64,000 bases of DNA from Blepharisma stoltei ATCC 30299 (lineage: Eukaryota; Protista; Ciliophora). The translations under genes were made by a program, and so were the position numbers. The number at the start of each line of letters is the position of its first letter. The first letter of the stretch is position 1. The DNA lies in NCBI GenBank assembly GCA_965603825.1, contig CBFDEM010000061.1:1-64000 (forward strand), given 5' to 3'. Below the pieces are notes generated by a model. The model was not told where the DNA came from. It saw only the letters and a program-made list of their open reading frames with translations, and searched no databases. Shown piece by piece: positions 6,998 through 64,000 of this stretch.

Positions 6998-9900
6998 ATG
7001 ATCCAATTTTTTATTTTATTCAGCTTAGCCTTTTTGAACCTCGCAACTTGCCCAATGAATAGCTACACATGCACTATTTCATCTGTCACTTGTACAGCTT
7101 GCAATTCTAATAGATTCTTGATCGATAGCAAAATATGTGCAGATTCTTGCCCTTCCCGTTTTACTGCAAGCTCGAATTTATGCACTTCCAGCAATACTAA
7201 CTGTGCAGCGCCAGCGTCGTCATCAAGTGCAGTTGTGCTCAGACTTCAATTTAAGCCAATTCAAGACTTGACACTTACTTCTATTGCAACAACTTCTGAC
7301 TCATCTGAACTTTTCGAAAATCCTGGAGGAATATCATATAACTCTCAGACCCAAAATTCTCCTCTTCCAACCTTAGACCGCGGCTTTTATTTTGCGACAA
7401 CATCAAGCATTACCAGCAACAAAAGCCATATCCCATCACTTTATTTTATGTTAAAACTTTGAATAAAACCTTTATCTTATGGACAAATTTTAGTCGTATC
7501 ATATAATTCAAAAAATTATATTTCCTGCTATATCTCTAACCCTGACCTCCCAAAATTTGAGATTATTGTCCAAAGCTCTACTGGGAGTGGTGAAACTTTA
7601 ATAACTGCAGTAAGCAGCACTAGTTCATCTCAAAACTGGCAAAATATGACTTTCAGGATTAACCAAACCTCTTGCAGCTCTCTCACTGTTGTTATTTATA
7701 TGAATAGTTCTGCAGTTGTGACTACCACCTTTAGTAGTGTAGAGGCAAGCTTTCCAAACAGCAATTCTTATACTTGAACAGTTGGGAAAGGAGGAGGAAA
7801 TGACTCATTTCGGGGATTTTTGGCTGTTTTAGAAGTTAGGTGCGACTCTCAGACTAGCTATTCATCTTCTCCAATCACTATAGAATGCTATGATAATCAA
7901 TTCTGAAATGGTTCGTCGTGTCAAAATTGTCCAGCTATTTGTTCGACATGGCCTTGATGCATTACCTCAACTACTTGCTCTGTATGTAGTGTAGTAGATT
8001 GCAGTTCTTGCCAAGCTTATTCCTCATTTACGTGCTTAGGCTGCTCCACAGGTGTTTTGCCGAATTGCTGTGACATCTTGGCAAGTGCTTGCACTCAGAC
8101 ATGGTCAAATACGGCATGTCAAACTGGTTATTTTCTTATTGGAGGCGTTTGCTTATATGCATGCCCATATGGATTCGGAAATTGTGTGTCTGTCTCTTCA
8201 GCTGTTATAACAGCTGATTTTATGACAACTTTTGCTGGAAGCTATGGTGCACTAATAACAGCAACAAGCCCTTCTAGTTATAACTTTTGGAATTCCCCAG
8301 AAGGAAGTGATCCTATCCCTGCAAAAAACCGAGGTCTTTACTTCAATGGTAGTGCTTTTCTATCAGGGTCAATAAATTTATCCCACACATGGAGTATGGG
8401 GATGTGGGTGTACGTAGTTAGTGGAGCAATCATTGGCCACAGTACAGGCAGGCTCTCTCTTTCTTCTGATGGAACTCTTTCATTTGACCTGCAAATGTGG
8501 GATGCAACATATGCTAGTTATTCTGCTTCTCAAACTATAATTCCAAGCACTTGGGCATATGCTTCATACTCTGTCGGGTTTTCAAGTAAAGCCTCAACTA
8601 TTACTCCATATTTAAATAATGTAGCTGGGACAGCCACTTCAGTCACAAATTATGTATTTAGACTTCAATCAGGAGGAACTCTCTATATAGGTAAAGATGG
8701 CACTCATTATTTTACAGGCTTTATTAGCTATTTTCAGCTCTGAGGAGTTACAATTACAAGTTTCAGCACTGCTTATAATCTCTACGGGTTTTCTGGAGGG
8801 ATCGCGAACACTTTATGACCATGCAGTATTGATCAATACTATAATGGAACTGCCTGTGAGTCTTGCTTGGGCACATGCTCGAGTGGCTGCGCTCGAGCAA
8901 ATTCATGCAATATATGTGTAAATGATTTATGCACCAAGTGTAACTATTTTACAACAGGAACTTGCTATGAGTGCGTTGCTCATGCTTCTGGTGCTACATG
9001 TGCATGCGATTCTGACTCTTTGCTTTCAGCAGATGGATGCTCATGCGATCCATGCTCAACTGGCTGCTCACAATGCACAGAGACAACTTATCAAAAATGT
9101 ACGGCTTGCTATTCGGGATTTTTTTCCTTCTCAGCAACTGGCCAATGCTTAAGTGAGTGCCCATCTGGGTATAATGCAAATTCTTCCACAAATAATTGTG
9201 ATTATTTCTCAAATCTAGCTCTTAGCCTAGATTTGACTGATCAGATCCGGCTGGATACGGTTTCTGGCTTTAATGTAGGCTCAAAAAATACAAACGTTTA
9301 TCCTGACTGATCTGATATTTATGATCCAATTCCTGCTTATAAAAGAGGCTATTATTTTAATCAAACGAGCTATTTATCCTCTTCAGCCATGATAGCGCCT
9401 TCATTTACAATTTCTGTTTGGATTAAATCATACTCGTCTGGAATATTATTGACCAAATATACTTCGACTGACATCCTTAAAATAACAATTAACTCATCAG
9501 GGTATATTGCACTTTCTATTATTTTTTCTGATTCATCCCCTGAATCTTTGTCCACGACAATAAATATTTTAAATCATTGAACTTTTTTGAGCTTTACTGG
9601 ACAAGTTCAATCAGATGGTAAAACGAAGCTGACTATTTATAGAAATGCAGTAAATTCTGATTCATTTACTACTGTATCTTTAATTTATTTCAAAGACACC
9701 CTGTCTGGGACACTTTATGTTGGCAGTGATGAAAATTTTGGAAGCAATGGACTCTATGGTTTTTTAGATCGGCTGAAAATCTATAATTCTTATTTTTATC
9801 AATCTGATGATTATGCTACTTCTTGCACTGGTTGCTCTGCTTGCCCTTCTAACAATCAGTGCTGAAGTGGGTGTGGCCTAAATGATTATCCAGATAGCTG

Positions 9901-12900
9901 CTCAGCCTGCTTATCAGTCTGCAATCAAGGCTGTGTTAGTGACTTAACTTGTAGACTTTGTAGGGATAATGAGTGCTACTCATGCACTACATTTTCAGGG
10001 GAATGTACTAGTTGTATCACAAACGCTTATAAATTAGCAGGCCATTGTAAATGCCTTTCAAATGCAATATGGATCTCCAGTTCTCAGTCCTGCGAACTTT
10101 GCAGCTCTGCTTGCTCGACTTGTTCAGCTCTTGAATATACTGGCTGCCTTATTTGCATATCAGGTAATTATCTAATCCAGTCTTTATGCATAACCTTTTG
10201 TCCTACAGGCTATATCATAAATGGCAGCAAATGTGATAGTGATACGGATTTCACTAACTCCTTTGTTTTTAATTTAAAGCCTCATCAAATAAAAGATATT
10301 ATATTAGACTCAGAATCAAAAATCCCAGTTCTCACTGGCAAAGATAATAGTTTTTACCCAACTTATGATGTGACCGATCCGATTGCAGCTATATACAGAG
10401 GGTATTACTTTTCTGGTTCTGCTTATATGCAGCTGCCTCCTTATGCAGGCACAATTTCACCACTGCTGACTTTTGCCCCAAAATTTGTAATATCAACCTG
10501 AGTGATGCCAATTAGTGCGACAGGAGCCCTTTTTTGTAAGCAAACAGATAGTGGACTATTTACAAAATATATGAGCTTTGAATTGATCAACCAATTTCCA
10601 TCACTTACTTTAACTTTAAAAGATTCTTCTACAATCACTTATACAAGTTCTATTTCATCATTAAAAGTAGATCTTTCTCAGTGGAATTTTATTTCAGCAG
10701 TCTCTTCTATAAGTGCAACTCCTCAACAAATTATTATCCTAACTACAAATACATATACAGACACTTCAAGCAATTTGCGTGCAAGTTGGCTGAATGATTT
10801 ACAAAGTTCATTTTTCTTAACAATTGGGGCTTGCCACCTCGATTCTCTAGCTTTAAATTCATTTTATTTCGGATTTCTATGAGATCTAAAAGTCTATAAT
10901 GCTCCAATATCGAGCTCTTTGACTTTAAGCTCTTGCAATGGTTGCTCATTATGCCCGATTGATAATTCAAATGCTTGCCTTGATAGCTGCCTAATAAACA
11001 GTTTTTGGGATGGAAGCAGCTGCAGTCTTTGTTTGCCTGCATGCTTTAGTCACGGCTGCGTAAGAGGGGACAAAAATTGTAACCTTTGCCAAGATGTCAT
11101 ATGCGAAATATGCGATGACTATACAGGCACCTGCATGACCTGCAAAACAAATGCTGCCTTAGTCGGCTCAAATTGCCAATGCAATGAAGGATACTACTGA
11201 AACAGTAATAATGAGGAATGCGATCTATGCGATACTTCTTGCAAAACCTGCACATCATCTACATATTTAGACTGCTTAACGTGCGTTGATGGTCTTGATA
11301 TGGCATCACGGATTTGTATGGCCAGCTGCCCATTAGGGTATTCTAAATCTTCATCAGGATGTGTTTTAACCAAAGTAAAAATTTTTGATTTGGATTTGAA
11401 TACACTTGAAGGAGTCGTCTGTGATAAAGCAAGCTCGATCCCAGCAGTTACTGGATCAACAAAACAATTTTATCCCGATTATGAAGCTGATGATCCAATT
11501 CCTGCTTATCTAAGAGGGTTCTGATTTAATGGCCTGTCTTCAATATTAAGACTGCCTGAGTATTCAAGCTACACATCACCAAGACTGGTGATTTCATCTC
11601 CTTTCACAATTTCTATATGACTAAATACTGAAACGCCATCTGCTTCAATATTGTCAAAGCATATTATTTCTGATAATTATCAGTCTTTTTATTCAATCTC
11701 ATTAATTGATAGCAAGCCTGAAATTTCACTTACTATTGGCTCGTCTCAGTTTTTACATATTTCCCAAAGCTCGCTTAAATATTATGAATGGAGCCATGCT
11801 ATGTTTACATTTGAGACCTCTCAAAGTGGATATAATACACTATCAAGCTACCTCGATGGCTTATCCGATTCATCAACGACAACCGAATATGGCGCTTTTA
11901 TTGATATAGGGCCTCTCACTACAATAGTTATAGGAGCTCTAATGAGCTCATCGACTGCTTATAATTTCTATCAAGGATTTATTTATTCGATACAAATATT
12001 TAATACAATAGTTTCACTATCAAGCCTATCCTCTAAATCTTGCACTGATAGCTGCAGTGTTTGCCCTACAAGCCAGATATGCATCCCCAACTGTAGAATA
12101 TATGAGTATTGAAATGGTCCTAGCTATAATGTATGCAATTTGTGTAGCACAAGCTGCACGAGATCATGCAGAAATAAACAAAGCACGTGCTCACTTTGTG
12201 ATAATCTATTGTGTGATGCCTGCACAGATTATTCAGCTTCAGGATGTGGATCTTGTAAAGAAAATGCTATTAATCCTGAATCTTGCATATGTGGTGAAAA
12301 TTATGTGCTAGATACCTCTAGTAACAGTACTTGTATTCCGCTTCCGCCTGGTGGATTTAGAGGGACTGATGGAACATTTTACTCATGCCCAAATTTATGC
12401 ACAATTTGCCAATCGCTTACCAGCTGCACAGCTTGTGTAGAAAACGCCAGCTTAATAAATGGTCTCTGCTATTGCAATTTAGGATACAATGGAACCATAG
12501 CCTGCACTTTTATCCCTTTTTCAGCAAAACTCACTGTTTTGTCAGATAACTCTCTTTATCTGAACTTTTCAGATAGTCTTGCAAATAGTTTTGCTAAAAA
12601 TGACGTTACCATAACTATTGAAAAGCAAGGAGAAGTTTCTTTCAAAATTGAGCAGGTAAATAGCACTTGCTATTATATTACGCTCGTGATGAATGATAAA
12701 ATTTCTAAGGGTGCTTTGGTTGCACTTAAGTTATTGAATTTAACTCAGTTTAGATCAGTTTCAAACGGAATCTTGAGCTCTTCCGAACTGTCTGGATATT
12801 TAAATTATTATGATCCTACACCTTATTCACCATCTGTTGCAGCTGCTGCATCACAAGCTGCAACTGGGGTCCAGGCCTCGATTTCTATTGCTGCTATCCT

Positions 12901-13978
12901 ATCTTTTATTAATCCAAGTCCAAGTTCTCTCTGAAGCATTATGAACTATCTGCAAATTCTTAGCTACTTAACATTATCAGGTATCCCAATATCTACTAAA
13001 ATGAGTACATTCTTAAATAATTTGAACTCTTTTAACTTATTCCCGAACATTTTCCCCTATTTCATAGATGAAAACGAGGGGAATACTCCTTATTATAAAG
13101 CTGAGGATTTTGGATATAACTCTGACTTGATACTGATAACTACGGGAAGCGATTTTACACTCATATTGTTTTCACTCTCAGCTTTACCTGCAGCTTTTTT
13201 CTTTTCGCGCTGCTCTCACAGGTGGATAGGCAAGAAATTCATGAAAGCTTTAAAAAATTACCGATTTTCATTCTATTTAAGATTTTGAATTCAATGCTAT
13301 CTTGAATTGGGAGCTGCTGCAAGTATTGGAATTGTGACACTCGGCTTTAGCAATTTAACTCAAATGATCAATATTATTCTTTGTATATTTATTTATATAT
13401 TGCTATCAATTACTCCGCCTTGGCTTCTTTGGTTTTCTTATAAAAGTAAGAATAGGATCCAATCACGCGAAAAAAGCTTTATTGCCTTATTTGATTCGCT
13501 CTTTTATGAATTCAGAACTGATGGAGAATTTCTTGCAACGCAGTATTACTTTTTATTCTTCTCGCGGAGGCTTATCTATATAGTAAACTTGGTATACTTG
13601 AGGGAGTTTCCACAGACTGAAGTGACTATTAACATCGTTCTCTCCTTAATGACAATCATGTATTTGTGGTTTTTCTGGCCATATGAAGATCCGATTTTGC
13701 AAGTATCTAATTTATTGACTGAAATCTTAATTTTCTTAGTTATGGGTGCAACATCGGTTTATTTATTCAATTTTGAGCAAAAAATTGTTTCAGCAATTGA
13801 GACTAGCATTGTTGCAATTGTCATAGCTATTATCGCAGTTCAATCGATTGTTTCAATAGTTATTTTTATCAGGACTCTCTTTGAGTTTGCTAAGCAAAAA
13901 CTCTCAACGAAAGAAAATATAAATAATATAAGGCCTCCTTGAATACACTTCAAAAAGCCCAATCATAGCCAAGAATAA
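6998..13978 (+). CDS. Giant membrane protein A, 2326 aa: signal peptide, 5 LamG-like/Cys-rich modules, ~8-TM TRP-like C-terminus
   Basis: All sub-ORFs (6998, 8057, 8867, 9389, 9587, 10502, 10919, 11300, 11651, 12140, 12941, 13307) share one frame and end in TGA; the true stop is TAA 13976-13978. The module motif (D)P.P...RG.[YW]F occurs at ~7380, 8330, 9345, 10400 and 11515. TM region: SLWSIMNYLQILSYL...FYEFR...RRLIY...WPYED. Confidence 0.92.
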
Positions 13979-14587
13979 TTAAATAAAATTATTTTAAAAT
14001 ATATATTTGTCTTAAAATATATAATTAGAATATTATAACTTTATATTTTAAATCGACAACAAAAATAAGACCTAATTTTTGTTGCATATTAAAAAATTCA
14101 CTTTAGAACATTAATATAAAAGCTTATATATTGGCTGAATTTGCACTAATTTGGCATTATAGTTGAAGCTTATGTATTTTTACGTTAAAAAACAATATGA
14201 ATTAGCAATAATTCATATTATTAAAGAACTAATGAGCATTTAAACATATAATAAGATTATTATGCAGTCGAAAATATAATTTTTCAATAACCCATTTTTC
14301 AAATTTGCTTTAATAATAAAGATTATTGGCTGTCTAAGAATCTAAATAAAATCTTATAGCTAAAAATAATGAAATTTTGTTAATATTTCATTAGAAAATA
14401 GTCTAATATTATTCTTTATGAACTAATTTCTGAAAAACACAAATGATTGCTATAATTTCTTTTTGTTTAAAACTAACTGCTCATTCTCATCCTCAGCACT
14501 TGAATTTCTAAAATCAGCTGAGAAAATTTTAAATTTCTGTTTTACTTTAGATCATAACTGCTGCCTCGTCTTACTTCTTAAATAAAA

Positions 14588-17500
14588 ATGATGCTATTTT
14601 TGACTTTATTCAACAGGTTCCTGGTGAGCCTTGCCACATGCCCAATAAATAGCTCGACATGCACTGTTTCATCAACTTCATACATAACATGTGACTCTAG
14701 TCGGTTTTTGGTTGACAGCAAAATATGTGCTGATTCTTGTCCTTCTCTTTTTACTACAAGTACAAATTTATGCACTTCAACGAGCACAAACTGCGATGTG
14801 CCAACGACAGCAAATGCCGTTGTTTTTAGACTTCTATTTTCAACGGTCACAGATCTAACTCTTTCATCTATCGCGAGCGATGTTGATAATACCGAACTTT
14901 TCCAAAACCCTGGCGGAGTCTCATACAATTCTCAGACACAAAATTCTCCTCTTCCAACAGTAGACCGCGGCTTTTATTTTGCAACAACATCAAGCATTAC
15001 CAGCAGCAAAAGCCATATTCCAGGGCCTTATTTTATATTGAATACTTGAATTAAGCCTCAGAGCGGTGGGGCTGGACAATTTTTCGTTGTTTCTTATAAT
15101 TCAAAGAATTATATACGTTGCTATTATGATACTGAACTGATGAAAATAGACATCATTGCGCAGAGCTCTACTGGGAGTGGTGAGACAACAAAAACAATAC
15201 AAAGCGCTGTCCAGGCATCACATTGATGACAGCAATTAAGCATTCAGTTTGCCCAAAGCGATTGCAGCACTCTAGGTGTCACTTTTTGATTCAACGCTGC
15301 ATTTGTTGCAGTAGCTCCATTCAGTAGCGTAGAAGCAAGCTTTCCTAATAGCAATTCTTATACGTGAACAATTGGGAAAGGAGGAGGAAACAACTCATTT
15401 AATGGATTCATTTGGTTTATTGAAGTCAGATATGATGGGACTAAGAATTATGGAGCCAGCTTTACACCTAATGCTAGAGAGTGCTTTGTTAACGCATATT
15501 GAAATGGCTCATCATGCATAAGTTGCCCTACTAATTGCTCAGGGTGACCTTGGTGCACTAGTGCAACTAGTTGCGCTGGATGTGGTATTGCAGATTGCGG
15601 CACTTGCCCAGCTTATGGGTCATCTACATGTACAAGCTGTATTACAGGTGTTTTACCGAACTGCTGTGACATCTTGGCGACTACTTGTACTCAGACGTGG
15701 TCAAATACTGCTTGCCAAACAGGAAAAGTTCTGGTTCAAGGGGTCTGCTTGTATGCATGCCCATATGGCTTTGGAAACTGTGCATCAGTCAGCTCCGCTG
15801 TAATAACTGCTGATTTTCTGACTTCTTTTGCTGGCAGCTATGGGACAGCTTTAATAACGGGAGCAAGCGCTTCAAGTTATTACTTCTGAAACTCTCCAGA
15901 AGGAGCAGATCCGATTCCTGCGAAATATCGAGGTCTTTACTTTAACGGTAGTGCATATCTCTCTGGGTTAATAAATTTATCACACACGTGAAGTATGGCA
16001 TTTTGAGTTTACGCTATGAGTGGAACAATAATTGGCCACAGCACAGGCCAACTTTCACTTTCTTCTAGTGGAACGCTTTCATTTGACTTACAAAAATGAG
16101 ACGCAACATATGCTAGTTATACTGCCTCGCATTCAATTCCTGCAGGCACTTGGAAATATGTCTCATATTCTGTGGGGTTTGCAAGCAAAACCTCAACTAT
16201 TACCCCATATTTAAACAATGCAGCCGGTACGGCAACTACAGCCACAAATTATGTGTTCAGGCTTCCAGCTGGAGAAACTCTCTATATAGGTAAAAGCGGA
16301 AGCACTTATTTTAATGGGTTTATTAGCTATTTTCAGTTATGAGGAGTTACAATTACAGGATTTAGCTCAGGCTACAATTATTATGGATTTTCTGGAGGAG
16401 TTGTAAGCTCTTTATGGCCGTGCGCTTTTAATCAATACTATGATGGATCTGCCTGCCAACCCTGCTTGGGCACATGCACAAATGGCTGTGCTCGAGCGAA
16501 CTCATGCAATATATGTGTAAATGATTTATGCACCAAATGTAATAATTATTCATCAGGGACTTGCTATGAATGTGTAACCCATGCCTCAGGGGTTACATGT
16601 GCATGCGATTCTGGATATTATCAGCCTTCAGGTTTAGCTCAGTGTGACATTTCAGTTTGCTACAGCACTTGCTCTACATGCCTAGCGTCATCGTCTGCCT
16701 ATTATCAATGCACAGCATGCCAAACTAACTACTATTTGTTTTTAAGTTCTATGTGCATTTCAAGCTGCCCTTCAGGTTATACAACTGAAACAAGTTCTTG
16801 CACTTTTTCTTCATCCATTAGTCTTAGCTTGTCGTTTTATGATCAGATTCTCCTGAACTCAGTCTCAGGGGTACAAGTCGGTTCATCAAGCTCAAATACT
16901 TATCCTTCCTATGACGGTAATGACCCATATCCAGCTTATCTTAGAGGGTATTATTTTTCTGGAACAAATTACTTATCAACCAGCACTGTGATAGGCCCAT
17001 ATTTCACAATTTCTATATGGATATTTCCAACTGCATATGGCATTATTGCCACAAAAGTAGTTTCTGGGTGTGAAATATTTTGCCTTGAAATTTTAAGCGG
17101 CACTGGATATCCCAAACTGTCTGTAGTTTGGGCTGACTCTAGCACCTTTTCTGTCACCTTATCCTCCAATGTAATAACTAACAGCTGAAATTTTATTGTT
17201 TTTACAGGGAAGCAAGATTCAACCTATGCAACTGCCATTAATTCATATTTAAATTCGGCAACTAAAGATTCAGGTCTCTCTTCTGGACTTACTTTTTTTC
17301 AGGACAACAGTTCTGGGACCCTTTATATAGGAACAATGGAAACCTTTACTGGCGGTTTTACAGGTTTTTTATATAATATAAACATTTTTAACCAAGGAAA
17401 TTTACAGCTGAACGACTATACAACTTCAAGCTGCACTTTGCCATGCACAAGCTGCCCTAGTGATCATGGCTGTCCTAATACATGTGCATTTTCTAAGTAT

Positions 17501-20500
17501 TATAATGGGTCAAATTGCATTGATTGTGTTTCCTGTCCTAAGGGATGCAGATATACTGACACGTGTGGACTGTGCAAGACAAAGCAATGCTATTCATGCA
17601 CCACTTTTACTGGTACCTGCTCAAGCTGTATAACAAATGCAGAAAGTGATGGGTCTGGAGGCTGCCAATGCGAGGCAAATGCTTTTTGGCAGTCTACCAC
17701 TGCCACTTGTGATTTTTGTGATGCGCTTTGTGCTATATGCAAACAAACCACCTATTTTGAGTGTAATACATGTGCAGCAGGGAAACAGATGGTAGGGATC
17801 ATCTGCTTAAATGACTGTCCTTATGGATATGGGACTTCATGCTCCTCAGTCACAACTGCTGTTATTGACCAATCCTTTGATACTGATTTTCAAGGGTCTT
17901 ATGGGATTTTTACAACAGGGACTTCCTCAAGCACTTACCAGCCATTTGTAACTCCAGAAACTATAGACCCTGTTCCTGCATATAAAAGAGGCCTCTATTT
18001 TGATGGAAGCATGTACTTGTTGTCTTCCACTTCTGTTTACCTTTCTCACAGTTTCTATATGGGATTATGAATTTATGTAATTACATATGGAGATTTATTA
18101 CAAAAACAAACAAGACTAACAGTTTCGTCAGCAGGCACAATTACAGCAATAGTAGAATCCACTGCTCAAGTGGCTTCTACACAAACCTTAACTCCAAGTT
18201 CTACGTTTACAGGCTGGGCTTATGTTTCCTTTTGTGTATGATACTCCTCAAACGCCACTCCTATCTCTCTATATATAAATGGAGCTGCAGCTGGGTCAAT
18301 TACTATTAGTGGAAATATCTTCAGAGACCAAGCATCAACGAGCCTGCAATTAGGTAAAAGCAGTTCTTCTACTGGGTTCGTTGGGTTTATCTACTATTTC
18401 CACTTATATAATACCCAGATTACAAATTTCGCTTCTCTTTATAGTGGCTTTACATTCTGTGGGTCTGGGACATCTTGCTTATGATCGTGTGATATATCTA
18501 CCTACAAAAATAGTGGCTCTTACTTAGCTTGTAGTACCTGCAGTAAAGGCTGCGTCAGAGCTAATACTTGTAACGTCTGTAACGATGTATTATGCTCAGT
18601 CTGCACTGGCTTCGACTCAGGGAAATGCACAACTTGCGTGACTAATGCATCAAAAAATCCGACTAATTGTGTCTGCAACTCTGGATATCGAACTTCAAAT
18701 GACGGATTTTCTTGTGTAGCTTGCTCTTCAGGATGCAATACCTGCACAGGAGATGGATATTATCAATGCACGAGCTGCACCAGTGGCAAATACTTTCTTA
18801 ATATCCAGTGTCTTTCTGAATGCCCATCAGGATACACACAAAATTCCTCCACAAAGAATTGTGACCTTACAACTGCCTCATTTCCTTTTTCTTTTTCTAA
18901 TATAATCCTACTTGGAAGTGTTTCTGGTAGTGACGTAGGGTCATTAGCCACAAATGCATATCCTACTTATGATTCAAATGACCCATATCCAGCCTATTTG
19001 CGAGGGTATTATTTCAATCCTACTAGCTATATGAAAGCCAGCTTTATGTTTGCCCCTAACTTTTCTATCTCTATATGGATAAAAGCGGAAGCAGAGGGTT
19101 ATGTTCTAGCAAAATACAGAGGAGGGTCAGTGAAAGGTAGTGTGTCAATAAAGTCAACTGGAGAGCCTACTATAAGCTTTCCTTTATCAGACTCATCGAG
19201 CACTATTACCCTGGATGGCGCTTCAAGCGTCCTTAACTCTTGATATTATGTATCGTTCAACTGGAAAATCAATGCTGATGGCACAACAACTGTGAGCTCT
19301 TATATCAATGGAGGTTCTCTTCTGTCTGCTTCTAGCGCTACACCGCTTTATCTTCAAGATAGCAGCTCTGGGAGTTTTTATATGGGATATTCAAGTGCAG
19401 GGTTTAAAGGGTTCTTGTGGAAAACTACTATTTACCCCCAAGAGGGGCATGCATCCGATGACTTGCTTATAGGAGGATGCTCAGGCACCTGTGCGAGGTG
19501 CCCAGTAGATTTGAGTTGTCCAGATGATTGCCCAATGACTCAATTCTATAGCGGCTCAGGCTGCACAACTTGCAAAGGGAATAATTGCCCTAAAGGCTGT
19601 AGAAATACTGATACTTGTCGAATCTGCAAGACCAGAGAGTGCGCTACATGCACATCATTTACAGGAGGAAATTCTTGCTTGACTTGCATTACAAACGCTG
19701 TGAGTGATGGCTCTGGAGGCTGCACCTGCGCTTTTAATGCTTTTTGGGTTTCTTCGTCAGAAACTTGCGAAATTTGCGATTTAGCTTGCTCGACATGCTT
19801 AAAAACGACTTATTTTGAATGCTCTACATGCTTAGTAAGCTATCAATTAGTAGGGACTGTGTGTTTGAATAGTTGTCCTTATGGCACTTCTTGTTCATCA
19901 GTAACAACCCCTGTTATAAATCTATCTTTTGACGCGGATTTTCAAGGCTCATATGGAATCTTTGCAACAGGAACAAATTCGGCAACTTATCAATTTTTTT
20001 ACAGTCCTGAGTCAGTTGACCCTATTCCAGCCTATAAGCGAGGGCTATACTTTAATGGGAACATGTATTTATTATCATCAGCCACCGTACTGCTTTCGCA
20101 TAGTTTTTCTATAGGAGCATGAATTTATGTAAAAACTGATGGCAATTTATTAGAAAAGCCCAGTCGATTTATATTATCTTCAACAGGGAGCATTTCAGCT
20201 ACCATGACTGACCCTTCTCAAGCAACATCCCCTCAATCCTTGTCTTCAGGCACCACACTGACTAACTGAAACTACTTATCAGTCACTTTTAGCTATACTT
20301 CAGATATTACAACATTGACAATTTATGTTAATGGCGGATCAGTTGCAACTTTACCAATTACCAACTATATTTTACGTGATCTTAGCTCGACTTACTTAAT
20401 GATTGGGAAAAGCAGCAGTTCTTCTGGCTTTGTAGGCTTCATTAATAGCTTTCAATTATGAAATTCACCTATCAGCTCTTTTACAGCCTATATAAACGCT

Positions 20501-23500: not shown

Positions 23501-23524
23501 AAGATGAAAAAGGCCCATCTTTAA
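14588..23524 (+). CDS. Giant membrane protein B, 2978 aa: 7 LamG-like/Cys-rich modules plus ~8-TM domain
   Basis: Sub-ORFs from ATG 14588 to TAA 23524 share one frame with TGA read as Trp. Module motifs at ~14965, 15930, 16945, 17985, 19000, 20040 and 21060. Confidence 0.92.
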
Positions 23525-27147: not shown

Positions 27148-27215
27148 AAAAATAGTTTATTTAAGCTAGCTGAGAATCCCAATAACGTTAATTTTAAATA
27201 TGCGAATTTACATAA

Positions 27216-28738: not shown

Positions 28739-28747
28739 AAATATTAT

Positions 28748-43900: not shown

Positions 43901-43927
43901 GGTGATAAAAAGGAAACTTAAAAACAT
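34913..43927 (-). CDS. Giant membrane protein C, 3004 aa: 7 LamG-like/Cys-rich modules plus ~8-TM domain
   Basis: ATG at 43927 (MFLSFLFITKIWLTFSCCPYNS). All sub-ORFs share one frame, and the stop is TAA 34913. Colinear with gene D except for a 4-aa deletion. Confidence 0.92.
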
Positions 43928-50700: not shown

Positions 50701-53700
50701 GTAGCCATTTCAGTATTTACTTATAAGACAGTTTTCTAAACAAGTATTGGAATTATCTATTGGGCACAATGAGCACCCATTACAAGAGCTTGACGTTAGA
50801 GAACTAACTGTAATTGTATTATAAATTTTTAGATCCCATAGAAACCCATTAAAAAATGACGTCAGAGTTGTGGAATCAAGATAGCTTGCCCCTATTGTTA
50901 TTATAAATGAGCTTTGCAAATCATTTAATCAGCTTGGATGCTGATTACTTGATATGTCAGTATATGTATTTGTTGTAAATTTTATAATTTGCTGAGGAGT
51001 TGCACTGATATCAGATATAGCTGAAATAAAATTCCATTGGGACAATCCAGCCTCCACTAAGGAAAGTGCACTTGTATAAGTGATTGCATTAGAATCCTGC
51101 AATGTAAGTGTAAGTGATGGATATTTGCTTACTAATTCAAGGCTCACAAATTTTTCAAATCCTCCATTGTCGGTTTGCTTCGAAAAAATGACGCCTGTAT
51201 CAGATACTGGATTTATCCAGGCTGATATCGTAAATTTTGGTGAAAAAGTAAGTAATGGGGAACCTGTGCCTGTATAAGGAGGTAACTGCATATAAGCTGA
51301 GCCAGAAAAGTAATATCCTCTATAAATAGCTGCTATTGGATCAGTTGCATCATAAGTAGGGTAAAATTTGTTATCTTTGCCTGTGAGAACTGGGATACTT
51401 GAAGCTAAATCTAGCACAATATCTTTTATTTGGTGTGGCATTAAATTAAACACTAAAAAGTCTGTATAAGCAGGGTCAGTATCACAATTGCTACCATTTA
51501 TAACATATCCAGTAGGGCAAAAAGTCATGCATAAAGATTGAATCAGATAGTAGCCTGCTGTGCATGTAAGACAGCCATTATAATCAACAGTAGAGCAAGT
51601 ACCACAAATTGTATTGCAGAGCTCGCAGGACTGAGAACTAGAGACTCATACAGCATTCGTATTGCACACACAATGGTCTACTGGTTTATGCGCATTTGTA
51701 ATGCAGCTTGCGCATTCTCCTGAAAAAGTAGTGCATGAGTGGCACTCTTTATCCCTGCAAAGTCGACAAGTTAAATCACTGACGCATCCTTGATTGCAGC
51801 CTGTCAAGCAAGCAGTGCAGCTATCAGGATATTTATCAAAATCGCATTCACTTAAACATTGGTTATTTAAAGGACAAACAGAACAGCCAGTATTGCATGA
51901 GGATGAATAGTCATAAGAATGATAAGTATCAGTGTTATAAATATATAATCTTGCTAAAAACCCATATAATCCTGAAGTCCCAAAGGTTTCATCATTTCCA
52001 ATATATAGAGTTCCTGCATTAGTGTCTTTAAAATAAATTAAAGCTGTAGTAGTAATATCGCTAAAAGCCGCTGTATTAATATAAAGACTCAGCTTAGTTT
52101 TGCCATCAGTTTGGACTTGTCCTGTGAAGGCTAAAAAGTTTCAGCTATTTATTACACTTGTTGAGGTAGTTAAAGTAGCAGTTGAAGAATCAGAAAAAAC
52201 TATTGAAAGCAAAGGGTATCCTGAGGAGTCTATAGTAGCTTTAAAAATGCCACTAGTTGTGTATTTTGTCATTAGAATTCCTGCGGTCAGTGGTTTTGTC
52301 CATAAAGAAATAGTAAATGAAGGTGACATCATAACAGTAGATGATAAATAATTGCTAAGATAAAAATAGTAGCCTCTTTTATAAGAAGGGATAGGATCCT
52401 TTGCATCTAAATTCCAGTCAGGATAAGCATTTGTACTTACAGAGCCTACATTAAAACCAGAAACCGTGTCAAGATGCACTTGGTCAGTCAAGTCTAGGCC
52501 AATTCCTAAGTCTGATGACCAATCACAAGTTTTTCCTGCAGAATTCGCACTATATCCAGTTGGGCATTCAGTTAAGCACTGCCCAGTTGGTGCAAAGAAA
52601 AAATACCCTGAAAAGCATGCTGTGCATTTTTGATAAGTTAAGCCTGTACATTGAGAACATCCAGTATAGCATGGCTGACATGAAAACCCATCATTTGAAG
52701 TTCAATATCCAAGGTCACACACGCATGGAGCAGGAGCTCCACTAGCATTAGAAACGCATTGGGAGCATTTTCCTGAGCCAAAACCAGAGCAAACAGAACA
52801 TAATAAATCATCACAAACATTACATGTAGATGCCCTGACACATCCTTTATTGCAAGAATTGCAGGCTGAACAAGAAGCACCATTTTTATAAGTAGAAATA
52901 CTGCATTCCCATAAACAAGAAGCTCCAGATGCGCAAAATGTAAAGCCACTGATAATAGTGAGAAAATCTGATATTTGGATGTTTCACAGCTGAAAATAAT
53001 AAATAAACCCAACAAATCCAGAGCTGCTTCCTTTTCCTAATTGCAAATTGGTTGACGCTTGGTCTCGATAAATTTTGCCAGAAATAGTCGTAGAGCCAGC
53101 AGAAACCCCATTAATATAAATAGAAAGAATGGAAGCATTTGAGGTGTAATAAATAGCAAGTGATAAATAAGTCCAACCAGTAAATGAAGAGGTTGGGGAT
53201 AATGTTTGTGTAGATGTTGCTTGTGCAGAGTCCTCCATTAAAGCTGTTATAGCGCCTGTTGATGAAACTGTTAGCCTTGTTTGTTTTTGTAATAAATCTC
53301 CATTAGTAGCTACATAAATTCATGCGCCCATTGAAAAACTATGTGAAAGATAGACAGAAACTGAAGATAATAAATACATGTTTCCATCAAAATAAAGCCC
53401 TCTTGCATATGTAGGAATAGGGTCATAAGTTTCAGGGGAATTAAAGTGCTGATATGTGCTTGATGATGCTCCAGTTGTAAAAATCCCATAAGATCCTTGG
53501 AAATCAGTGTCAAATAATTGATCAATTACTGCTGTTGTCACTGAAGAACAAGAAGTTCCATAGCCATATGGACAATCATTCAAACAAATAATGTCTACTA
53601 TTTGTTTTCCTGTGACACAAGTAGTGCACTCAAAATAAGTAGTTTGCTTACATACAGAACAAAGGGCATCACAAAAATCACAAGTCGCTGTACTAGAATG

Positions 53701-56700
53701 CCAAAAAGCATTTGTCTTGCATTGGCATCCGCCAGACCCATCAGCTTCTGCATTTGTAATGCAGCTTGAGCAAGATCCAGAGAAAAAAGTACATTCATAG
53801 CACTGTTTTGTCTTACAAAGTCTGCAAGTATCTGCATATCTGCATCCTTGTGTGCAAGACCCCATACAATTACTATATGTCGACCCATCATAATATTGTG
53901 TAATTGGTGCATTATCGGGACAGTTATGATCGATTGGGCAGCTTGAGCATGAAGAAATACAGCTTGAGGTTGTATAGTCGCTGTAATGCAAGTTTTCGAC
54001 GTTATAAATATTTAAGTCATACAAAAATCCAATAAAGCCGCTGGTTGTGGTAGCTTTTGTCCCAATATAAAGATAGTTTGCGCTGCGATCCTGAAAATAC
54101 ATAACATTGGATGATGATCCTGTTTCTTTCGTTAGAGAATTAAAATATGAGCTTACTGTAGTTTTATGGCTTGCATCAATTGTTCCTGCGAATGCAATAT
54201 AATTTCAACTGCCATTCAATGCATTTTCTGATAGAGTAACTGAAAAAGACGAAGAGTCCTTTAAAATAAGAGAAAGCTTAGGGTACCCTGAACCACTCAA
54301 AATTTCTAAACAAAATATTTCATTCCCTGAAACTGTTTTAGCAAGAATTGTTCCTGCTGCAGTAGGATACACCCAAATAGAGACAGTAAAATAAGGTCCA
54401 ATCACAGTATATGAGGACATATAAGTTGTGCCAGTAAAATAGTATCCTCTTAGATAGGCCGGATAAGGATCATTAGAATCATAGCTAGGGTAATAATTTG
54501 ACATAGAATTTCCTATTATGACTCCTGAAACGGAATGAAGCATTATTTTATCATAAAGAGATAAGCTTAGCCCAGTCGTTGATGAAAAATCACAGTTTTT
54601 TGTGCTTGAGTTTTCTGTATATCCTGAAGGACAGCTCAAAAGACATATCATAGAGTTGTATAAAAAATAGGTGGAGCTACAAGAAGTGCAAGAATAATAT
54701 GAAGAATCGATGCAGTGGGTACAGCCATTATAGCAAGGAGAGCATACAGCTTGATTTGTAGGCTGATAATACCCAGAATTGCAAGTACAAGGAGAGCCAG
54801 CAGCATTAGTAACACACGATGTGCAAGTTCCTGATGCAAATGATGTGCACTGGGTACATAAAAAATCATCACAAATATAACAAGATGTTCCTCTGGTGCA
54901 GCCCATTGTGCATGTACCTAAACATGATGCACAATTAGTTCCATCATAATATTCAGAGTAATCACAAGGCCATAAAGTTGATACTGTCCCTCCAGTTAAT
55001 GTGCCAATACTAGAATAGGCAGAAAAGTCACTAATGGCGACTTGTCATAGCATAAAATGAGCGATAAATCCTTTAAAGTTGCTTGAGCCTTTTCCTATGT
55101 ATAATGTTCCTCCTGAAGGCAATCTAAAAACAAAATTTGTGATGGAAGTAGATGCTGCAGCAGCATTGTTAAGATAAGGAGTAACAGTAGTAATTTTATT
55201 TGAAAATCCAACTGTATAGGAAACGTAACTCCATGTGTTTGAAGTTATAGTCTGAGTAGCAGACCAGCTTCCTGAGCTAGCGTCTCATTTTTCCAAGTAA
55301 AAAATAATATAGCCACTGGAATCAATGGTAAGTTTATTAGAGCTGTGGCTGACTAAAGTACCAGAAATAGCATAAACCCACGTACTCATGCTTCAAGTAT
55401 TGGATAAATTAATAGATCCAGCCAAATACTGGTTAGAATTAAAATAAAGCCCTCTATTTTTAGCTGGGAAAGGATCAGAAGATTCAGCAGAAGACCAATA
55501 ATTATAACTACTCGAGCTTATTGCCGTAATTAAAGCAGTTCCATAGCTCCCAGTAAATGCCCCTGTAAAATCAGCTGTTAAAACAGCAGAAGAAACAGCT
55601 GCACAATTCCCAAATCCATAAGGGCATGCATATAAGCAAACTCCTCCAATACGAACCTTTCCACTGCTGCATGCAGTATTAGACCAAGTTTGTGTACAAG
55701 TTGTCCCATAAGTGTCGCAGCATCCTGGAGCAATGCCTGTATAGCAAGCTGAGCACATTGATAAAGAATACCCAGAGCATGCACTACAGTCGACTGTTTG
55801 ACAAATACTACAGTCAGTTCCTCTTACGCACCAAGGCCAAGTAGGACAGCTAGAATCACAGTTTCCGCAGGCTGATCCAGTTCAATATTGGTTATTAACG
55901 CAATTAATAATAGGAGAAGTTGTTCCATAAGTTCTAGTGGTATCTGATCTAGCTTGCAGTCAATAAATAAACCCTCTAAATGAGTCTCCGCCAGCTACAC
56001 TCCCAATTTTTCATACATAAGTAGCCACTGTAAATCTTGCTTCTGCGTTATTTATCACTGTTGTTCCAACTCCTGAGTTACCAATATAAAAAGATACATC
56101 TACAGTGTCACAGTCCGTTTGGTCGAGCACTATTGAAGCAGAATGCCACGATGACGTATAAGCTGACGTCGCAGTCCCAGCTATACTTTTTGCATTACCA
56201 TTATCATCATATATATTTGCGGCAAGCTTGTATACATTGCTGGAATCTGCATAAATCCGCAAATATTGCGTAGAGCCTGCAATAACGTTCAAAATTTCTC
56301 CACTACTGAGAGGCATTATCCACATATTTAGAGTAAAATATAAGGCTGGGGTATAGCTTGAGCTGCTTCTTATGCCTGAAGTAGTGGCAAAATAAAAGCC
56401 ACGGTCAATAGTTGGGAGAGGAGAAGTGCGGGTGGCAGAGTTATAAGGAACTGAGCTGGGATTTGTAAATTGGTCAGCCGAGCCAGTTGAGCTTGCTATA
56501 TAAGTGCCTGTTACGTCTTGGACTGTCGAAAAGGGCAATGTAAATAAAATTGCACTATCTCCACTAGGTGCATTGCAGAAATATGTGTCTCAAAAACTAT
56601 TGTGGCTAGATGAAAAAAGTGAAGGACATCCAGCTAAGCATATTTTGTCGTCAGCGTAGTATTTGATTCCACTTTTGCATGCGCAACCAAATGCACCATA

Positions 56701-56772
56701 GTCGTTGCTATTATATGGGCAGCAGCAGAAAGTCAACCAAAGCCTGGTGAAAAAAAGCAAAATTAGAATCAT
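47746..56772 (-). CDS. Giant membrane protein D, 3008 aa: 7 modules plus ~8-TM domain; closest paralog of C
   Basis: ATG 56772 (MILILLFFTRLWLTFCCCPYNS). All sub-ORFs share one frame, and the stop is TAA 47746. Confidence 0.92.
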
Positions 56773-57086
56773 ATTAATTATAAAAATGACGTCGATAAGT
56801 TTATGAGCTAAACAAAAATAGCTATTACCGACGAATTATTTGATAAAATTATGATGATATTCAGCAATTAAGATAAGAATAAAAATCATAAAAGGTTAGT
56901 TTCTTAATATTGAAGAGACTGATCATAAGTAAAAATTAATTTTTCTTGATAAACAGTTAATTTTGATTACAGAAAAAATAATGATCTTCTAATGTTTATT
57001 CGGCTGTAAATAGTCGTAAAAAGACTCAAAATATTTTGAGAATGAACGTCTGTAATATTTTGCTGATAAGCTAAAAATTCGATTCT

Positions 57087-58088: not shown

Positions 58089-61000
58089 TTATTTTTCAAC
58101 TTTTGAAACTTGAGTTTTATATGGGTGAACGCTTCGTTTTACAATCCCTGCTTTGGTAAGCTTATGATGGATAATCCCAAACAAAGTCCTTGCAAAAATG
58201 GCTACTGAAGCAAATGATTGAATTCCCATAATAGCTATCACAATTGCTACAATTCCATTTTCAATAGTTGAAACAATATCCTGGTCTAAATTAAATAAAT
58301 AAACTGAGGATGAGCTCATTATCAAAAAAATTGAGATTTCAGTCAATAAATTACATACTTGCAAAATTGAGTCTTCAAATGGCCAAAAGAAAATTAAATG
58401 CAAAATGGTCATCATAGAAAGAACGACGTTAATAGTCACTTCTGTTTGTGGATAATCTCTTAAGAAGACTAAATTTATTATATAAATAAATCTTCTTATA
58501 AAGAACACAAAGTAATATTGTGTTGCAAGTAGCCCACGATCAGTTCGAAATTCATAAAAAAATGAGCTGAATAGATCTGTAAATGTTTTTTCTCGTGATT
58601 GGATCCGATTTTTATTTTTATAAGAAAACCAAAAATATGCTGGTGGGGTAACAACTAATAGAACATAAACAGCTGAGCAAATAATAAAATTTGTTATTTG
58701 AGTGATATTGCTAAAGCCAAGCGTTATAAGTCCAACACTTGCAGCTGCTCCCAGCTCTAGATAGCATTGTATCCAAAATCTTAAATAAAAGGCAAATTGA
58801 TAAGCCTTAACTGTTTTCACAAATTTCTTCCCTACCCACCTGAATGAGCATCGCGAAAAGAAGAAAAAAATTGGAAAAACTGATAGAGAAGTCAATATTA
58901 AAGTAAAATCATTTCCTGTAGTTATTAATATCAGATCAGTGTCAAACCCAAAATTCTTTGCTTGAGAGTAAGGAGTATTTCCTTCATTTTTATCAATGAC
59001 ATACTTAAAAACATTTGGAAATAAATTAAAAGAATTCAAATTGTTCAAAAAACTGCTCATTTTGCTAGAAAAAGGGATTCCTGATAAAGTCAAGTAGCTA
59101 AGAATTTGCAAACTATTCATCATACTTCATAGAGAACTTGGATTTGGATTCACAACAGATAAAGCAACAGCTCCAGAAATAGCAGTTTGGGCACTAGCTG
59201 TAGCTTGAGAAGTGACTGCCGCAATGGCTGGAGAATAAGGTGCAGGATCATAAGAGTTCAAGGATATTGAGATTTCTGATGAATTTAAGACCCCATTAGA
59301 AGCTGACCTCATTTCGGTTAAATTTAAAAACTCAAGAGTAGCTATAGTGCCTTTAGATATTTCTTCTGATATTATTAAAGATATATAGTAACAAGTGTTA
59401 TTAAGCTGCTCTAGTTTGCATGAAATTTTACCTTGCTTTGCAATTGTTATAGTAAAATCATTTAGAGTAAGGCTCTCAGCAAGATTGTCTGAAAAAGTGA
59501 GATAAAGAGAATTGTCAGATAAAACGGAAACTTTCACTGAAAAATTAACTAAAGTACAATTTTTCGTGCCATTGTAGCCTAGATCACAATAGCATAGATT
59601 ATTCTTTAACCTTGCGTTTTCTACACAAGCAGTGCAGTTAGTAAGAGACTCACAACTAATACAGTAGCTTGGACACGAGTATAAAATTCCATCAGGACCT
59701 CTGAATCCTCCAGCTTCCAGAGGAATGCATGTATTATTAGTGGAAGTGTCAAGGACATAATTTACATCACAAATGCATGAGTCAGGGTTAATCGCTTTTT
59801 CTTTACAAGTTGTGCAGCCAGAAGCAGAATAATCAGTGCAGACGTCACATAATGAATTGCTACAAAGTGAGCAAGTAGGTTTCCAGTCCCTGCAGTTTTT
59901 TTTGCATTTCGTATTACACTGATAGCATATATTATAAGCAGGGCCGCTCCAATATTGATTTATTTTACAATTAGGGATACAGATTTGACTGATAGGACAA
60001 GCACTGCAGGCTTCAGTACAAGAGGTAGTCGATAGGCTTGATACTGATTTGGCAATATTAAACATCTGAATACTATACATAAAGCCTTGATAGAAATTAT
60101 AAATAGATGATGCACTTACTTGAGCTCCTATAGTCATTGTAGTATGAGGACCAGCATCACTAAAAACTCCATATCCTGTCAAACTAGGAGAATAAGATAT
60201 ACCATTTATAGAGCAAGACAATGTATTATAGCCACCAGAAGCAGTCTCCAATGTAAATGCTAAATGGCTCCATTCATAAATTTTAAGTGATGCTTCACAT
60301 ATATGAAAAATTGGAGATAAGCCTAAAGAGCTTGAAATTATAGGCTTGCTGTCCATTATCGATATATAGTAAAGCGTTGAATAATCATTAGAAATGTTAT
60401 GTTTTGACAATATAGCAGAGTATGGGCTCTCAATGTTTAGCCATATAGAAATTGTAAAGGTAGGGGCAATCACAAGTCTTGGCAATGTATAATTTGAATA
60501 CTCAGGCAGTCTTAAAACTGAGGATTGTCCATTAAATCAAAATCCTCTTAAATAAGCTGGAATTGGATCATCAGCTTCATAATCAGGATAAAATTGCTTT
60601 GTTGACCCAGTAACGACTGGTATTAGGCTTGCTTTATCATATATGACTCCATTCAGTGTATTTAAATCTAAGTCAAATATTTTTTCTTGAACCAGCACAC
60701 ATCCACTTGGAGTTGAAGAATACCCTGACGGACAGCTGGACCCACAAATTCCTGACGCCATATAATAGCCATCAGCGCATGTCAAGCAGTCTAAATAATT
60801 CCAAGATGTGCAGGTTTTACAAGAAGAATCACAAGCTTCGCAATTTTCAGTACCAGAATTTCAGTAATACCCATCATCACATTTACAGGTTGTGCCTACT
60901 AAATTTGCATATGTTTTGCAAGTAATGCAGGTATTTGTATAATTATCGCATATTTTGCATATGATATCTTGGCAAAGGTTACAAGTGTTATCTTTTCTAA

Positions 61001-64000
61001 CGCAGCCAACAGTTGAGCATCCAGACAAGCATGAATCGCAGATAATACCATTTCAGTATTTGTCTATAAGACAATTATCTAAGCAAGTATTAGAATTATC
61101 AATTGGGCATAATGAGCACCCGCTGCAAGAGCTTGACGCTAAAGGACTGGCTGTAATTGTATTATAGATTTTCAGATCCCATAGAAACCCATTAAAAAAT
61201 GATGTTAAAGTTGTAGAATCAAGGTAACTTGCTCCAATCAAATTGAAAAAAGAACTTTCTAAATCATTTAGCCAACTTGCATGCAAATCGCTTGATGTAT
61301 CAGTATTTAGATTTGCAGTAAGCTTAACTATTTGCTGAGGAGTTGTACTAATGTCAGACAGAGCTGAAATAAAATTTCATTGAGAAAGAGTAGTCTCCAA
61401 TGAGGCAAGAGCACTTGTATAAGTAATTGTAGTGGATTCTTGAAGAGTCAGAGTAAGTGAAGGAAATTTATTTACTAGTTCAAGACTTACATATTTTGTA
61501 AATGCTCCACTATTAATTTGTTTAGAAAAAATAACCCCAGTCCCAGATATTGGTTTTATCCAAGTAGAAATAATGAATTTAGGAGCCAATGTAAGCAATG
61601 ATGAAGCTGTGCCTGTATAAGGAGGTAACTGCATATAAGCTGATCCAGAAAAGTAATATCCTCTATAAATAGCTGCTATTGGATCAGTTGCATCATAAGT
61701 AGGGTAAAATTTGTTATCTTTACCTGTGAGAACTGGGATACTTGAAGCTAAATCTAGCACAATATCTTTTATTTGGTGTGGCATTAAATTAAATACTAAA
61801 AAGGCTGTATAAGTAGGATCAGCATCACAATTGTTACCATTTATAACATATCCAGTAGGGCAAAATGAAATACATAAAGACTGAATTAAATAATGGCCTG
61901 CTATGCATGTAAGACAGCCATCAATTTTAAGAGTAGAACAAGTAGCACACACTGCATTACAGAGCTCACAGGATTGGGTGCTTGAGATTCATATTGCATT
62001 AGTAAGGCACATACAGTGGTCTACAGGCTTATAAGCATTTGTAATGCAGCTTGTACATTCACCTGAAAAAGTAGTGCACGAGTAACATTCTTTGTCCCTG
62101 CAAAGTCTACAAGATAAATTACTGACACACCCTTGGCTGCAGCCTGCCAAGCAAACAGTGCAGCTATCTGGGTATTCATTTACAGCGCAATTACTTAAGC
62201 ATTGATTATTTGCAGGGCAAACTGAGCATCCACCACCACAAGAAGTAGAATAATCATCAGATTGATGACTATAGGAGCTATAAATATTAACTCTTGCTAA
62301 AAACCCATATAATCCTAAAGTCCCAGAGGTTTCGTCATTTCCAATATATAAAATTCCTGTATTAGTATCTTTAAAGTAAATTAGAGATGACGTTGTGGTA
62401 ACAGCAAATGCCGCTGTATTGATATAGAGAGACAACTTCGTCTTGCCATCGTTTTGGACCTGCCCTGTAAAGCTTAAAAAGTTCCAACTACTTATTATGT
62501 TTGTTGGAGTAGTTAAAGTGAGAGATGATGAATCAGAAAAGGTTACTGAAAGCAAAGGATATCCTGAGGAGACTATTGATATTTTTAGGATATCGCTCAA
62601 AGTATATTTAGTCAATAGAACTCCAGCTGAAAGTGGCTTTGCCCACAGGGAAATAGTGAAGGATGGTGCTATTACGACAGTGGAATATAAATAATTGCTT
62701 TGATAAAAATAGTAGCCTCTTTTATAAGAAGGAATAGGATCCTTTGCATCTAAATTCCAATCAGGATAAATATTTGTATTCACAGAGCCTACATTAAACC
62801 CAGAAACTGTATCAAGACGTACTTGGTCAGTCAAGTCTAGACCAATCCCTAAATCTGATGACCAATCGCAAGCTTTTCCTGCAGAATTTGTACTATAGCC
62901 AGATGGGCATTCAACTAAGCACTGCCCAGTTGGTGCAAAGAAATAATACCCTGAAAAGCATGCTGTGCATTTTACATAAGTTAAACCTGTACATTGAGAG
63001 CAACCAGAAGAGCATTGATCACAGGAAAGCCCATCAGCAGAAGTTGTATAGCCAGGATTACATACACAAGGAGTTCCACTAGCATTAGAAACGCATTGGG
63101 TGCATTTTCCTGAGCCAAATCCAGAACAAATAGAGCATAATAAATCATCACAAATATTGCATATAGATGACCTGACACAGCCTTTACTACAGGAATTGCA
63201 GGCTGTATAAGTAGTCCCATCATAATAATGAGATAAATCACAAGACCATAAACAAGCATAGCCAGAGCCACAAATAGCACTAATATAGCTTGAAAAATCA
63301 TTAATTGGAGAATTTCATAGCTGAAAAGCATTGATAACCCCTACAAAGCCTGAAGAGCTGCTTTTCCCGATCATTAAATTTGTGGTAGCAAGGTCTCTAA
63401 ACACATAATTTAAAATAAGTGTATTTGCAACTGAAACACCATTGAGATAAATATTGAGATTTGTGACACTAGAAGTGTATTCAAAGGTGACTGATAAATA
63501 GTTCCAATTAGTTAGAGTAGACCCTGAAGATAAACTTTTAGTAGACACTGTTTGTGTAGGGTCTTCCATTTTAGCACTTATATCTCCTGTAGAATGTAAA
63601 ACAAGTTGCTGGCTTTCTTTTTCAAGCCAATCTCCATCAGTGATTACATAAAGTCAAGCTCCTATAGAAAAACTATGTGAAAACAAAAAGTTAGCTGACG
63701 ACAATAAGTACATGCTTCCATCAAAATATAAGCCTCGCTTATATGCAGGAATCGGGTCAATTGATTCAGGAGTATTAAAAAATTGAAAAGATGATGTACT
63801 TGTTCCTGTTGCAAAAATCCCATAAGAGCCTTGAAAGTCTATATTGAAAGATTGATCTATCACAGGGGTTGAGACTGGTGAACAAGGAGATCCAAATCCA
63901 TAAGGACAACCATTTAAGCAGACGTTCCCAACCAGTTGAGAGCTTCCTGAGCAAAGAGAGCATTCAAAATAAGTTGTTTTTATACAAGTAGAGCATAAGG
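58089..64000 (-). CDS. Giant membrane protein E (partial, 5' end outside the window): last 4 modules plus ~8-TM domain
   Basis: Sub-ORFs from 63863 down to 59123 share one frame, and the stop is TAA 58089. Module motifs at ~63740, 62720, 61665 and 60545. Confidence 0.9.

Follow-up and report, generated by a model that had tools for sequence, protein, structure and literature searches.

A probable giant surface-protein family with germline-varied module sets beside a macronuclear telomere of Blepharisma stoltei

Contig C61 (298 kb) belongs to the 41.46-Mb, 64-contig assembly of Blepharisma stoltei ATCC 30299, and its first 64 kb carry five long genes, here termed A to E, whose products are strings of similar modules combined in different sets. 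The locus raises the question of what these proteins are and how their paralogs came to differ. This stretch of 64,000 nucleotides is referred to as the window. It begins at a macronuclear telomere, and the gene cluster starts 5.5 kb from it. UGA encodes Trp in the macronuclear genome of B. stoltei ATCC 30299 (PMC9942806), and this assignment was adopted for all frames; the long frames of the window appear only with UGA taken as a sense codon, and genetic codes 1, 11 and 6 were rejected because they break the genes into fragments. The evidence below indicates, with a good degree of confidence, that the locus belongs to a heterotrich family of giant surface proteins in which sets of modules have been varied in the germline to give a fixed, expressed repertoire. 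The features of the five genes are as follows (the number after each module letter is its window position).

1–1437, strand not assigned: macronuclear telomere (CCCTAACA)n, 179 copies (PMC9942806)
6998–13978 (frame 6938–13975), plus strand: gene A, database protein P0011; modules a(7148)-b(8162)-g(9158)-h(10199)-i(11327)
8990–9015, plus strand: b/g junction of gene A, where the tail of b is fused to the tail that precedes g
14588–23524 (frame 14582–23521), plus strand: gene B; modules a(14738)-b(15758)-c(16766)-d(17816)-e(18821)-f(19874)-i(20876), then stalk and membrane domain
20840–20880, plus strand: f-to-i junction of gene B, without g-h and with no clear remnant of an h tail
34913–43927 (frame 34916–43954), minus strand: gene C; modules a(43783)-b(42793)-c(41800)-d(40741)-g(39733)-h(38686)-i(37558), then stalk and membrane domain
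47746–56772 (frame 47749–56835), minus strand: gene D, a recent paralog of C; modules a(56628)-b(55626)-c(54633)-d(53574)-g(52566)-h(51519)-i(50391)
58089–64000 (in-window frame 58092–63998), minus strand: 3′ part of gene E, database protein P0003; modules f(63908)-g(62909)-h(61862)-i(60734), then stalk and membrane domain
62196–62900, minus strand: core of module g in gene E, given as an example; a LamG/concanavalin A-like domain whose Laminin_G_3 match (E = 2.6e-7) passes the curated threshold
58092–59560, minus strand: base of gene E, made up of an Ig-like beta-sandwich stalk and about nine membrane helices, similar in shape to FLC/Pkd2 (PF06011)

Module typing reproduced the strings proposed in the initial annotation of the window, namely a-b-g-h-i for A, a-b-c-d-e-f-i for B, a-b-c-d-g-h-i for C and D, and a string ending in f-g-h-i for E. 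It had also been predicted that E would carry e before f, with nine modules as one option; modules a-b-c-d-e were found past the window edge, up to C61:69158, and the full frame (58092–69263, 3,724 codons) encodes the complete nine-module form. Gene A, which consists of a signal peptide, modules, a Cys-rich region, an Ig-like stalk and a multi-pass membrane domain, lacks c-d-e-f, amounting to 4107 nucleotides relative to E, and the switch placed near 9010 was located at CACDS (8999–9013), upstream of which the sequence is B-like (up to TCACDS) and downstream of which it is the tail that precedes g.

Each module comprises about 340 residues, of which a LamG-like core of about 215 residues contains 1–4 Cys and a tail of 100–157 residues, or about 37% of the module, contains 16–25 Cys. 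Two module pieces exceeded the Pfam cut-off for Laminin_G_3 (PF13385; 31.3 and 30.5 bits versus 27.6), and the remaining pieces fell below it with E values of about 1e-5. The model of the e-f pair is a beta-sandwich with a predicted local distance difference test score (pLDDT) of 86, and the X-Y pair, in the classes defined below, gave a predicted template modelling score (pTM) of 0.69. Foldseek searches with the e-f model matched neurexin LNS (E = 1e-10) and laminin LG (E = 1e-9) domains, as well as the LG domain of CELSR1. Clostridial toxin binding domains were rejected as relatives, the matches reflecting just the common concanavalin A-like fold. Within genes A–E, modules of the same letter are 43–94% identical, compared with about 22–36% between classes. 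In trees of the window genes and the 25 paralogs described below, the modules grouped by type and not by gene, as had been expected; the cores form clusters of a, of b with d/f, of g with c/e, and of h with i. These define class Y (b/d/f) and class X (c/e/g), so that the array consists of a, an alternating Y-X unit, and then h and i. The d and f modules are about 60% identical and are not cleanly separable across the family, in which several hybrids occur. The proposed two-module repeat thus stands for the alternation of b/d/f with c/e/g and fails for g-h, which is not a repeat unit because h is i-like. The pair sizes follow the same division: cd (2064 nucleotides) and ef (2046) agree with the proposed value of about 2.05 kb, and gh (2175) does not.

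A survey of C61:1–264,000 identified 25 members with long frames and three broken members, near C61:79–87 kb, 136–141 kb and 163–168 kb; about five more lie in the rest of the contig. The members are lettered in contig order, and a* denotes a truncated, degenerate a module. The 25 architectures are listed below.

E: abcdefghi
C, D, H, P and U: abcdghi
T: abcdghi, with a frame that starts inside a
K, X and Z: abefghi
Y: abc(d/f)ghi
B and V: abcdefi
W: acdefi
A: abghi
AA: abefgi
J and R: aefi
F: aefefi, with e-f duplicated
L: a*efghi
I, N, O and S: a*efi
AB: abi

The N-terminus of I, L, N, O and S was considered as a new domain and rejected, since it proved to be a degenerate truncated a. The C61 genes are single open frames spanning all modules, and the module order is kept across the 25 paralogs, as the initial annotation had claimed for the window. 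At the f-to-g boundary of a broken member lies a 56-nucleotide near-perfect palindrome (C61:81733–81788; 25-bp arms, 6-nucleotide loop, TATA ends, fold z −11.6), which is possibly a retained internal eliminated sequence (IES) or a foldback scar.

Approximately 17 independent events can be counted in the history of these architectures. Eight of the ~17 are even changes between sequences of the same class, and where a close parent exists the local nucleotide identity at such joins is 61–75%, as expected for unequal crossover; the loss of e-f (2046 nucleotides) from gene C, a crossover between d and f tails with 63% local identity, is an example. Joins between classes have about 29–39% identity and share 5–7 nucleotides. 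Loss of the g-h pair took place at three junctions that are clearly distinct (F/J/R; I/N/O/S; V/W), with B as a possible fourth; the flanking nucleotide identity is 29–37% with few common bases, and g-h loss is therefore not homologous unequal crossover. In gene B, which has no clear h-tail remnant, the f-i join may be either a deletion product or the ancestral state. About 12 of the 17 breakpoints lie in the Cys tails (crude binomial p ~ 0.006 against the 37% tail share), and several fall within LamG domains. The proposed unequal recombination in Cys-rich linkers accordingly stands as far as the enrichment of breakpoints in tails is concerned, and does not extend to the g-h losses or to the breaks in LamG.

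We infer that these architectures arose by three routes from a chassis consisting of a signal peptide, a LamG and Cys-tail string of the form a-(Y-X)n-h-i, an Ig-like stalk and an approximately nine-helix, FLC/Pkd2-like membrane domain, which would have expanded to about 30 tandem paralogs on C61. In the first route, unequal crossover between same-class modules (50–65% nucleotide identity) would change the module number by an even count because the array alternates. In the second, short microhomologies shared by in-register Cys motifs of dissimilar tails would have been the sites of in-frame deletions that removed g-h, h, b or b-c-d. In the third, gene conversion and segment exchange would have acted among paralogs, including those on different contigs, and would also have placed modules on a REJ-type base. 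The outcome would be a fixed, expressed repertoire under purifying selection.

A selected neighbour grammar, in which Y and X, and likewise X and h, function as packed or cooperating pairs and deletions that produce Y-Y, X-X or Y-h are purged, is an appreciable possibility, with the balance of probability lying against it. It would account for the joint departure of g and h. Among the 118 adjacencies in the 25 genes (YX 33, XY 28, aY 15, Xh 13, hi 13, Yi 11, aX 4, Xi 1), none is YY, XX or Yh. The tails of f and h are hardly closer to each other (38% amino acid and 47% nucleotide similarity) than those of f and g (33% and 47%) or e and f (36% and 48%), and despite these similar tails only f-to-h/i joins were seen, 3–4 times. 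None of the 7–9 cross-class joins falls in the 9 of 22 classes that would be "forbidden" (p = 0.025–0.009 under a crude uniform null), and the X-Y pair model folds together with the pTM given above. Against this, the independent events are few and the null is crude, and Y-Y is not forbidden everywhere, as it occurs in P0083, another B. stoltei paralog, and six-fold in the metagenomic P0022 (L024:10001–18583), where six near-identical Y modules stand in a row; runs of h-h occur in P0013. A shorter paralog with two Y modules adjoins P0022 (L024:20593–25536).

The stricter code proposed initially, in which all changes are whole pairs made by unequal recombination in Cys linkers and a-b and i are constant, fits the five window genes and is consistent with about 11–12 of the ~17 events being even and with breakpoints mostly in tails, but is very improbable for the family. 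Single-module indels in other members, which by the standard of the initial annotation itself would refute this code, did turn up, and odd losses were found in 10 of the 25 paralogs through four events: W lost b, AA lost h, and both F/J/R and the I group (I/L/N/O/S) lost b-c-d, so that a-b is not constant. In addition, module c of V lacks 138 internal residues, the switch points of Y and X/Z fall within LamG domains, and h lies outside the b/d/f class. The strict pair rule fails because of the odd losses and the in-domain deletion of V; whole-pair change is a tendency, not a rule.

Exchange among paralogs is visible along individual gene pairs. In a tree of the constant C-terminal region, c and e each switch between present and absent five times, and g and h each do so four times. 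Synonymous divergence (dS) between V and W is 0.04–0.07 over f and i versus 0.59 in the membrane domain; between E and C/D it is 1.2 in a-b and 0.5–0.9 downstream; between F and J it is 0.14 in a versus 0.5–0.9 elsewhere; and along the C/D pair it ranges from 0.12 to 0.56. The a module of F is close to that of J/R, and its second e-f pair is closest to that of its neighbour E. This unevenness points to conversion and segment exchange. The ratio of nonsynonymous to synonymous divergence (dN/dS) among gene pairs is mostly 0.1–0.5. For module e, the outermost intact module, it is about 0.8–1.3 (I, N, O, S, J and R) versus 0.2–0.5 elsewhere in the same pairs, a pattern that may reflect relaxed or positive selection.

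The combination in gene B is inherited, and is in all likelihood neither chimeric nor somatic. The window interval 16700–22650, covering c to i, is present without a difference in one 18,877-base short-read DNA contig, from a run that may be of the same strain or sample. It is likewise present in a single contig of 8,997 bases from a run that is probably RNA, and the ends of this contig coincide with the ends of gene B. A run about 3% divergent, probably a second strain, has the same gene B modules in order with the f-i junction bridged, and of the strain differences (40 listed, partial) 21 codons are silent and 17 change a residue, giving a dN/dS of roughly 0.26. Contigs of four runs contained no alternative somatic forms of gene B, within the limit that contigs lose rare forms. 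This occurrence in independent contigs and a divergent strain argues against both chimerism and somatic assembly for gene B, and agrees with the initial expectation that the combinations are not assembly artefacts.

The generation of module sets from fewer germline genes by alternative IES-like excision during macronuclear development is even less credible than the strict code. Blepharisma does excise about 40,000 mostly intragenic IESs (PMC9942856), but each combination here is a separate locus, 44–95% diverged throughout; the junctions are common to clades of paralogs and have accumulated substitutions; and the layout of B is unchanged in the ~3% divergent strain. The sole pair-sized joint found in reads (18024–20094) was rejected, having been traced to cross-mapping from the f module of gene E. 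Chimeric assembly between repeats, although the cluster is repetitive and at a contig end, can practically be dismissed, since the modules are too divergent to collapse (C and D share at most 94% amino acid identity) and B recurs base for base in the separately assembled 18.9-kb short-read contig, possibly of the same strain or sample.

Several points weigh against the reading of a germline-varied, fixed repertoire. The old junctions have drifted and their exact positions are uncertain; the read check concerned gene B alone and used contigs, in which rare variants are lost; and B and AB, which have Y-i, branch early in a tree that is unrooted. Given this early branching, the nine-module form may have been partly assembled rather than ancestral.

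Module i is followed by a Cys-rich stretch, the Ig-like stalk and about nine membrane helices. The AlphaFold model of the gene E base (pLDDT 90, pTM 0.77) has strands at 9–100 and then nine long helices with shorter ones, and its closest shape in the Atlas is a fungal TRP/TRP_N cluster (TM score 0.69 over 408 residues). Pfam TRP (PF06011) matched weakly in 3 of 54 homologs (best E = 1e-5); gene E has no Pfam TRP or TRP_N match, PF14558 is absent also among the 54 homologs scanned, and solved structures include no clear relative of the membrane domain. The membrane domain has no Pfam 7tm match, and its similarity to rhodopsins and G-protein-coupled receptors (GPCRs; Z 7–8.5) is within the background for helical bundles. 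No GPS/GAIN or REJ match was found in the scanned parts of the C61 genes, which have a single Ig-like stalk; by the features tested, these proteins appear to be neither adhesion GPCRs nor polycystin-1. Paralogs on other contigs (C12, C48, C40, C29, C2, C63, C6 and C24), known as database proteins and match coordinates, mostly have two in-frame TAG codons in the membrane domain, fitting 15-nucleotide introns; C61 members have no such TAG and align without insertions, and the introns may have disappeared in the founder of the C61 group.

A profile search of proteins (E ≤ 0.001) gave 1,723 matches, including Stentor coeruleus proteins, metagenomic proteins and B. stoltei members in which the module number reaches 13, and several other B. 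stoltei members show strict alternation. Family members are unnamed in databases or named "TNFR-Cys domain" proteins. P0009, whose source name is MLEC_2, begins with about 280 residues that precede its modules and may form a malectin-like N-terminal domain attached to the common chassis. Two members are mosaics, each within a single genomic frame. In P0007, on C61, modules 2–8 group as sisters with the modules of P0004, which is encoded on a different contig, and i and the membrane domain are of C61 type. In P0015 (C40:316464–318266), a-b-c-d-e-f are each sister to the C61 letters and stand on a REJ-containing base, of a kind that carries GPS in P0018 and is shared with 18 other matches; REJ or GPS is carried only by such off-cluster relatives. 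This base represents a second, polycystin-1-like family, and the two mosaics indicate that strings of ectodomain modules are transferred among loci and also from one type of receptor base to the other. A broader scheme, in which a grammar-selected repertoire of LamG strings moved between two polycystin-like bases, of FLC/Pkd2 nine-helix and REJ/GPS polycystin-1 type, provides a single cell with germline-encoded combinatorial recognition coupled to putative channels, is conceivable but doubtful.

Other genes lie in and beside the cluster. A tandem pair of eIF4A-like DEAD/Helicase_C genes (window 3956–6662, minus strand) adjoins the telomere; TPR-repeat (102-bp period) and related genes occur among the cluster genes at window 1656–2636 (plus strand), 44758–47415 (plus strand) and C61:87597–96370, the telomere-adjacent one resembling a 5′-truncated copy; and ordinary genes (copine, TPR, Dopey_N) occupy window 23555–34010, between plus-strand A/B and minus-strand C–E.

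The products are most likely surface sensors or adhesins, whose lectin-like domains would bind glycans or proteins at varied distances from the membrane and whose base might serve in signalling or as a channel. Members of the family are candidates for mediating the recognition of prey, mates or substrates by Blepharisma and Stentor, and about 25 of them form a natural series of receptors differing by defined modules, in which effects of module number and neighbours on reach and binding are testable. In this family the nine-helix domain of FLC/Pkd2 type, which is poorly understood, is connected with large putative ligand-binding ectodomains, the same ectodomain being present also on a polycystin-1-like base. 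The searched literature contained no description of this protein family, and the repertoire is real and apparently undescribed.

Among known systems, the arrays of LG domains in neurexin, CELSR and laminin resemble the C61 proteins in having tandem LamG domains spaced by Cys-rich domains, and share the fold alone (8–14% identity). Unlike in these arrays and in polycystin-1 receptors, the diversity on C61 comes from gene-level rearrangement, not splicing; with polycystin-1 (REJ-GPS) there is the further likeness that C61-type modules also occur on REJ(-GPS) bases in Blepharisma. Giardia VSP, Paramecium surface antigens, Plasmodium var and yeast FLO/ALS are clustered paralogs with Cys-rich or tandem modules and mosaics formed by ectopic recombination. 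There are weak VSP matches in the C61 Cys tails, but the C61 proteins have a multi-pass membrane base in place of a glycosylphosphatidylinositol (GPI) or single-pass anchor. In fungal FLC/Pkd2 TRP-like proteins (PF06011 + PF14558; S. pombe Pkd2, Trp663, Trp1322), an extracellular Ig-like domain directly adjoins a membrane domain predicted to have nine helices (bioRxiv 10.1101/2022.08.11.503631), and the modelled C61 base is alike in this arrangement. Unlike the fungal proteins, which have few paralogs, those of C61 have a LamG/Cys ectodomain of 1,000–3,200 residues before the stalk and tens of paralogs in Blepharisma, and their channel activity is putative. The leucine-rich repeat (LRR) genes of Tetrahymena, which have 90-bp exons and are enriched in subtelomeric regions, vary in the number and content of their repeats through unequal crossover in the germline, both inside a gene and between different genes (PMC6564038). 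The C61 family likewise shows gain and loss of units and exchange between paralogs; its position near a macronuclear telomere is not proof of a germline subtelomeric one, and no retrotransposon link was found, unlike in Tetrahymena. Its units also differ, being typed and ordered two-domain modules of about 1 kb in uninterrupted frames, and not intron-bounded exons. The diversifying mechanism is an ordinary one, of a kind proposed for many clustered surface-protein families and for the Tetrahymena LRR genes (PMC6564038), here acting on kilobase two-domain modules.

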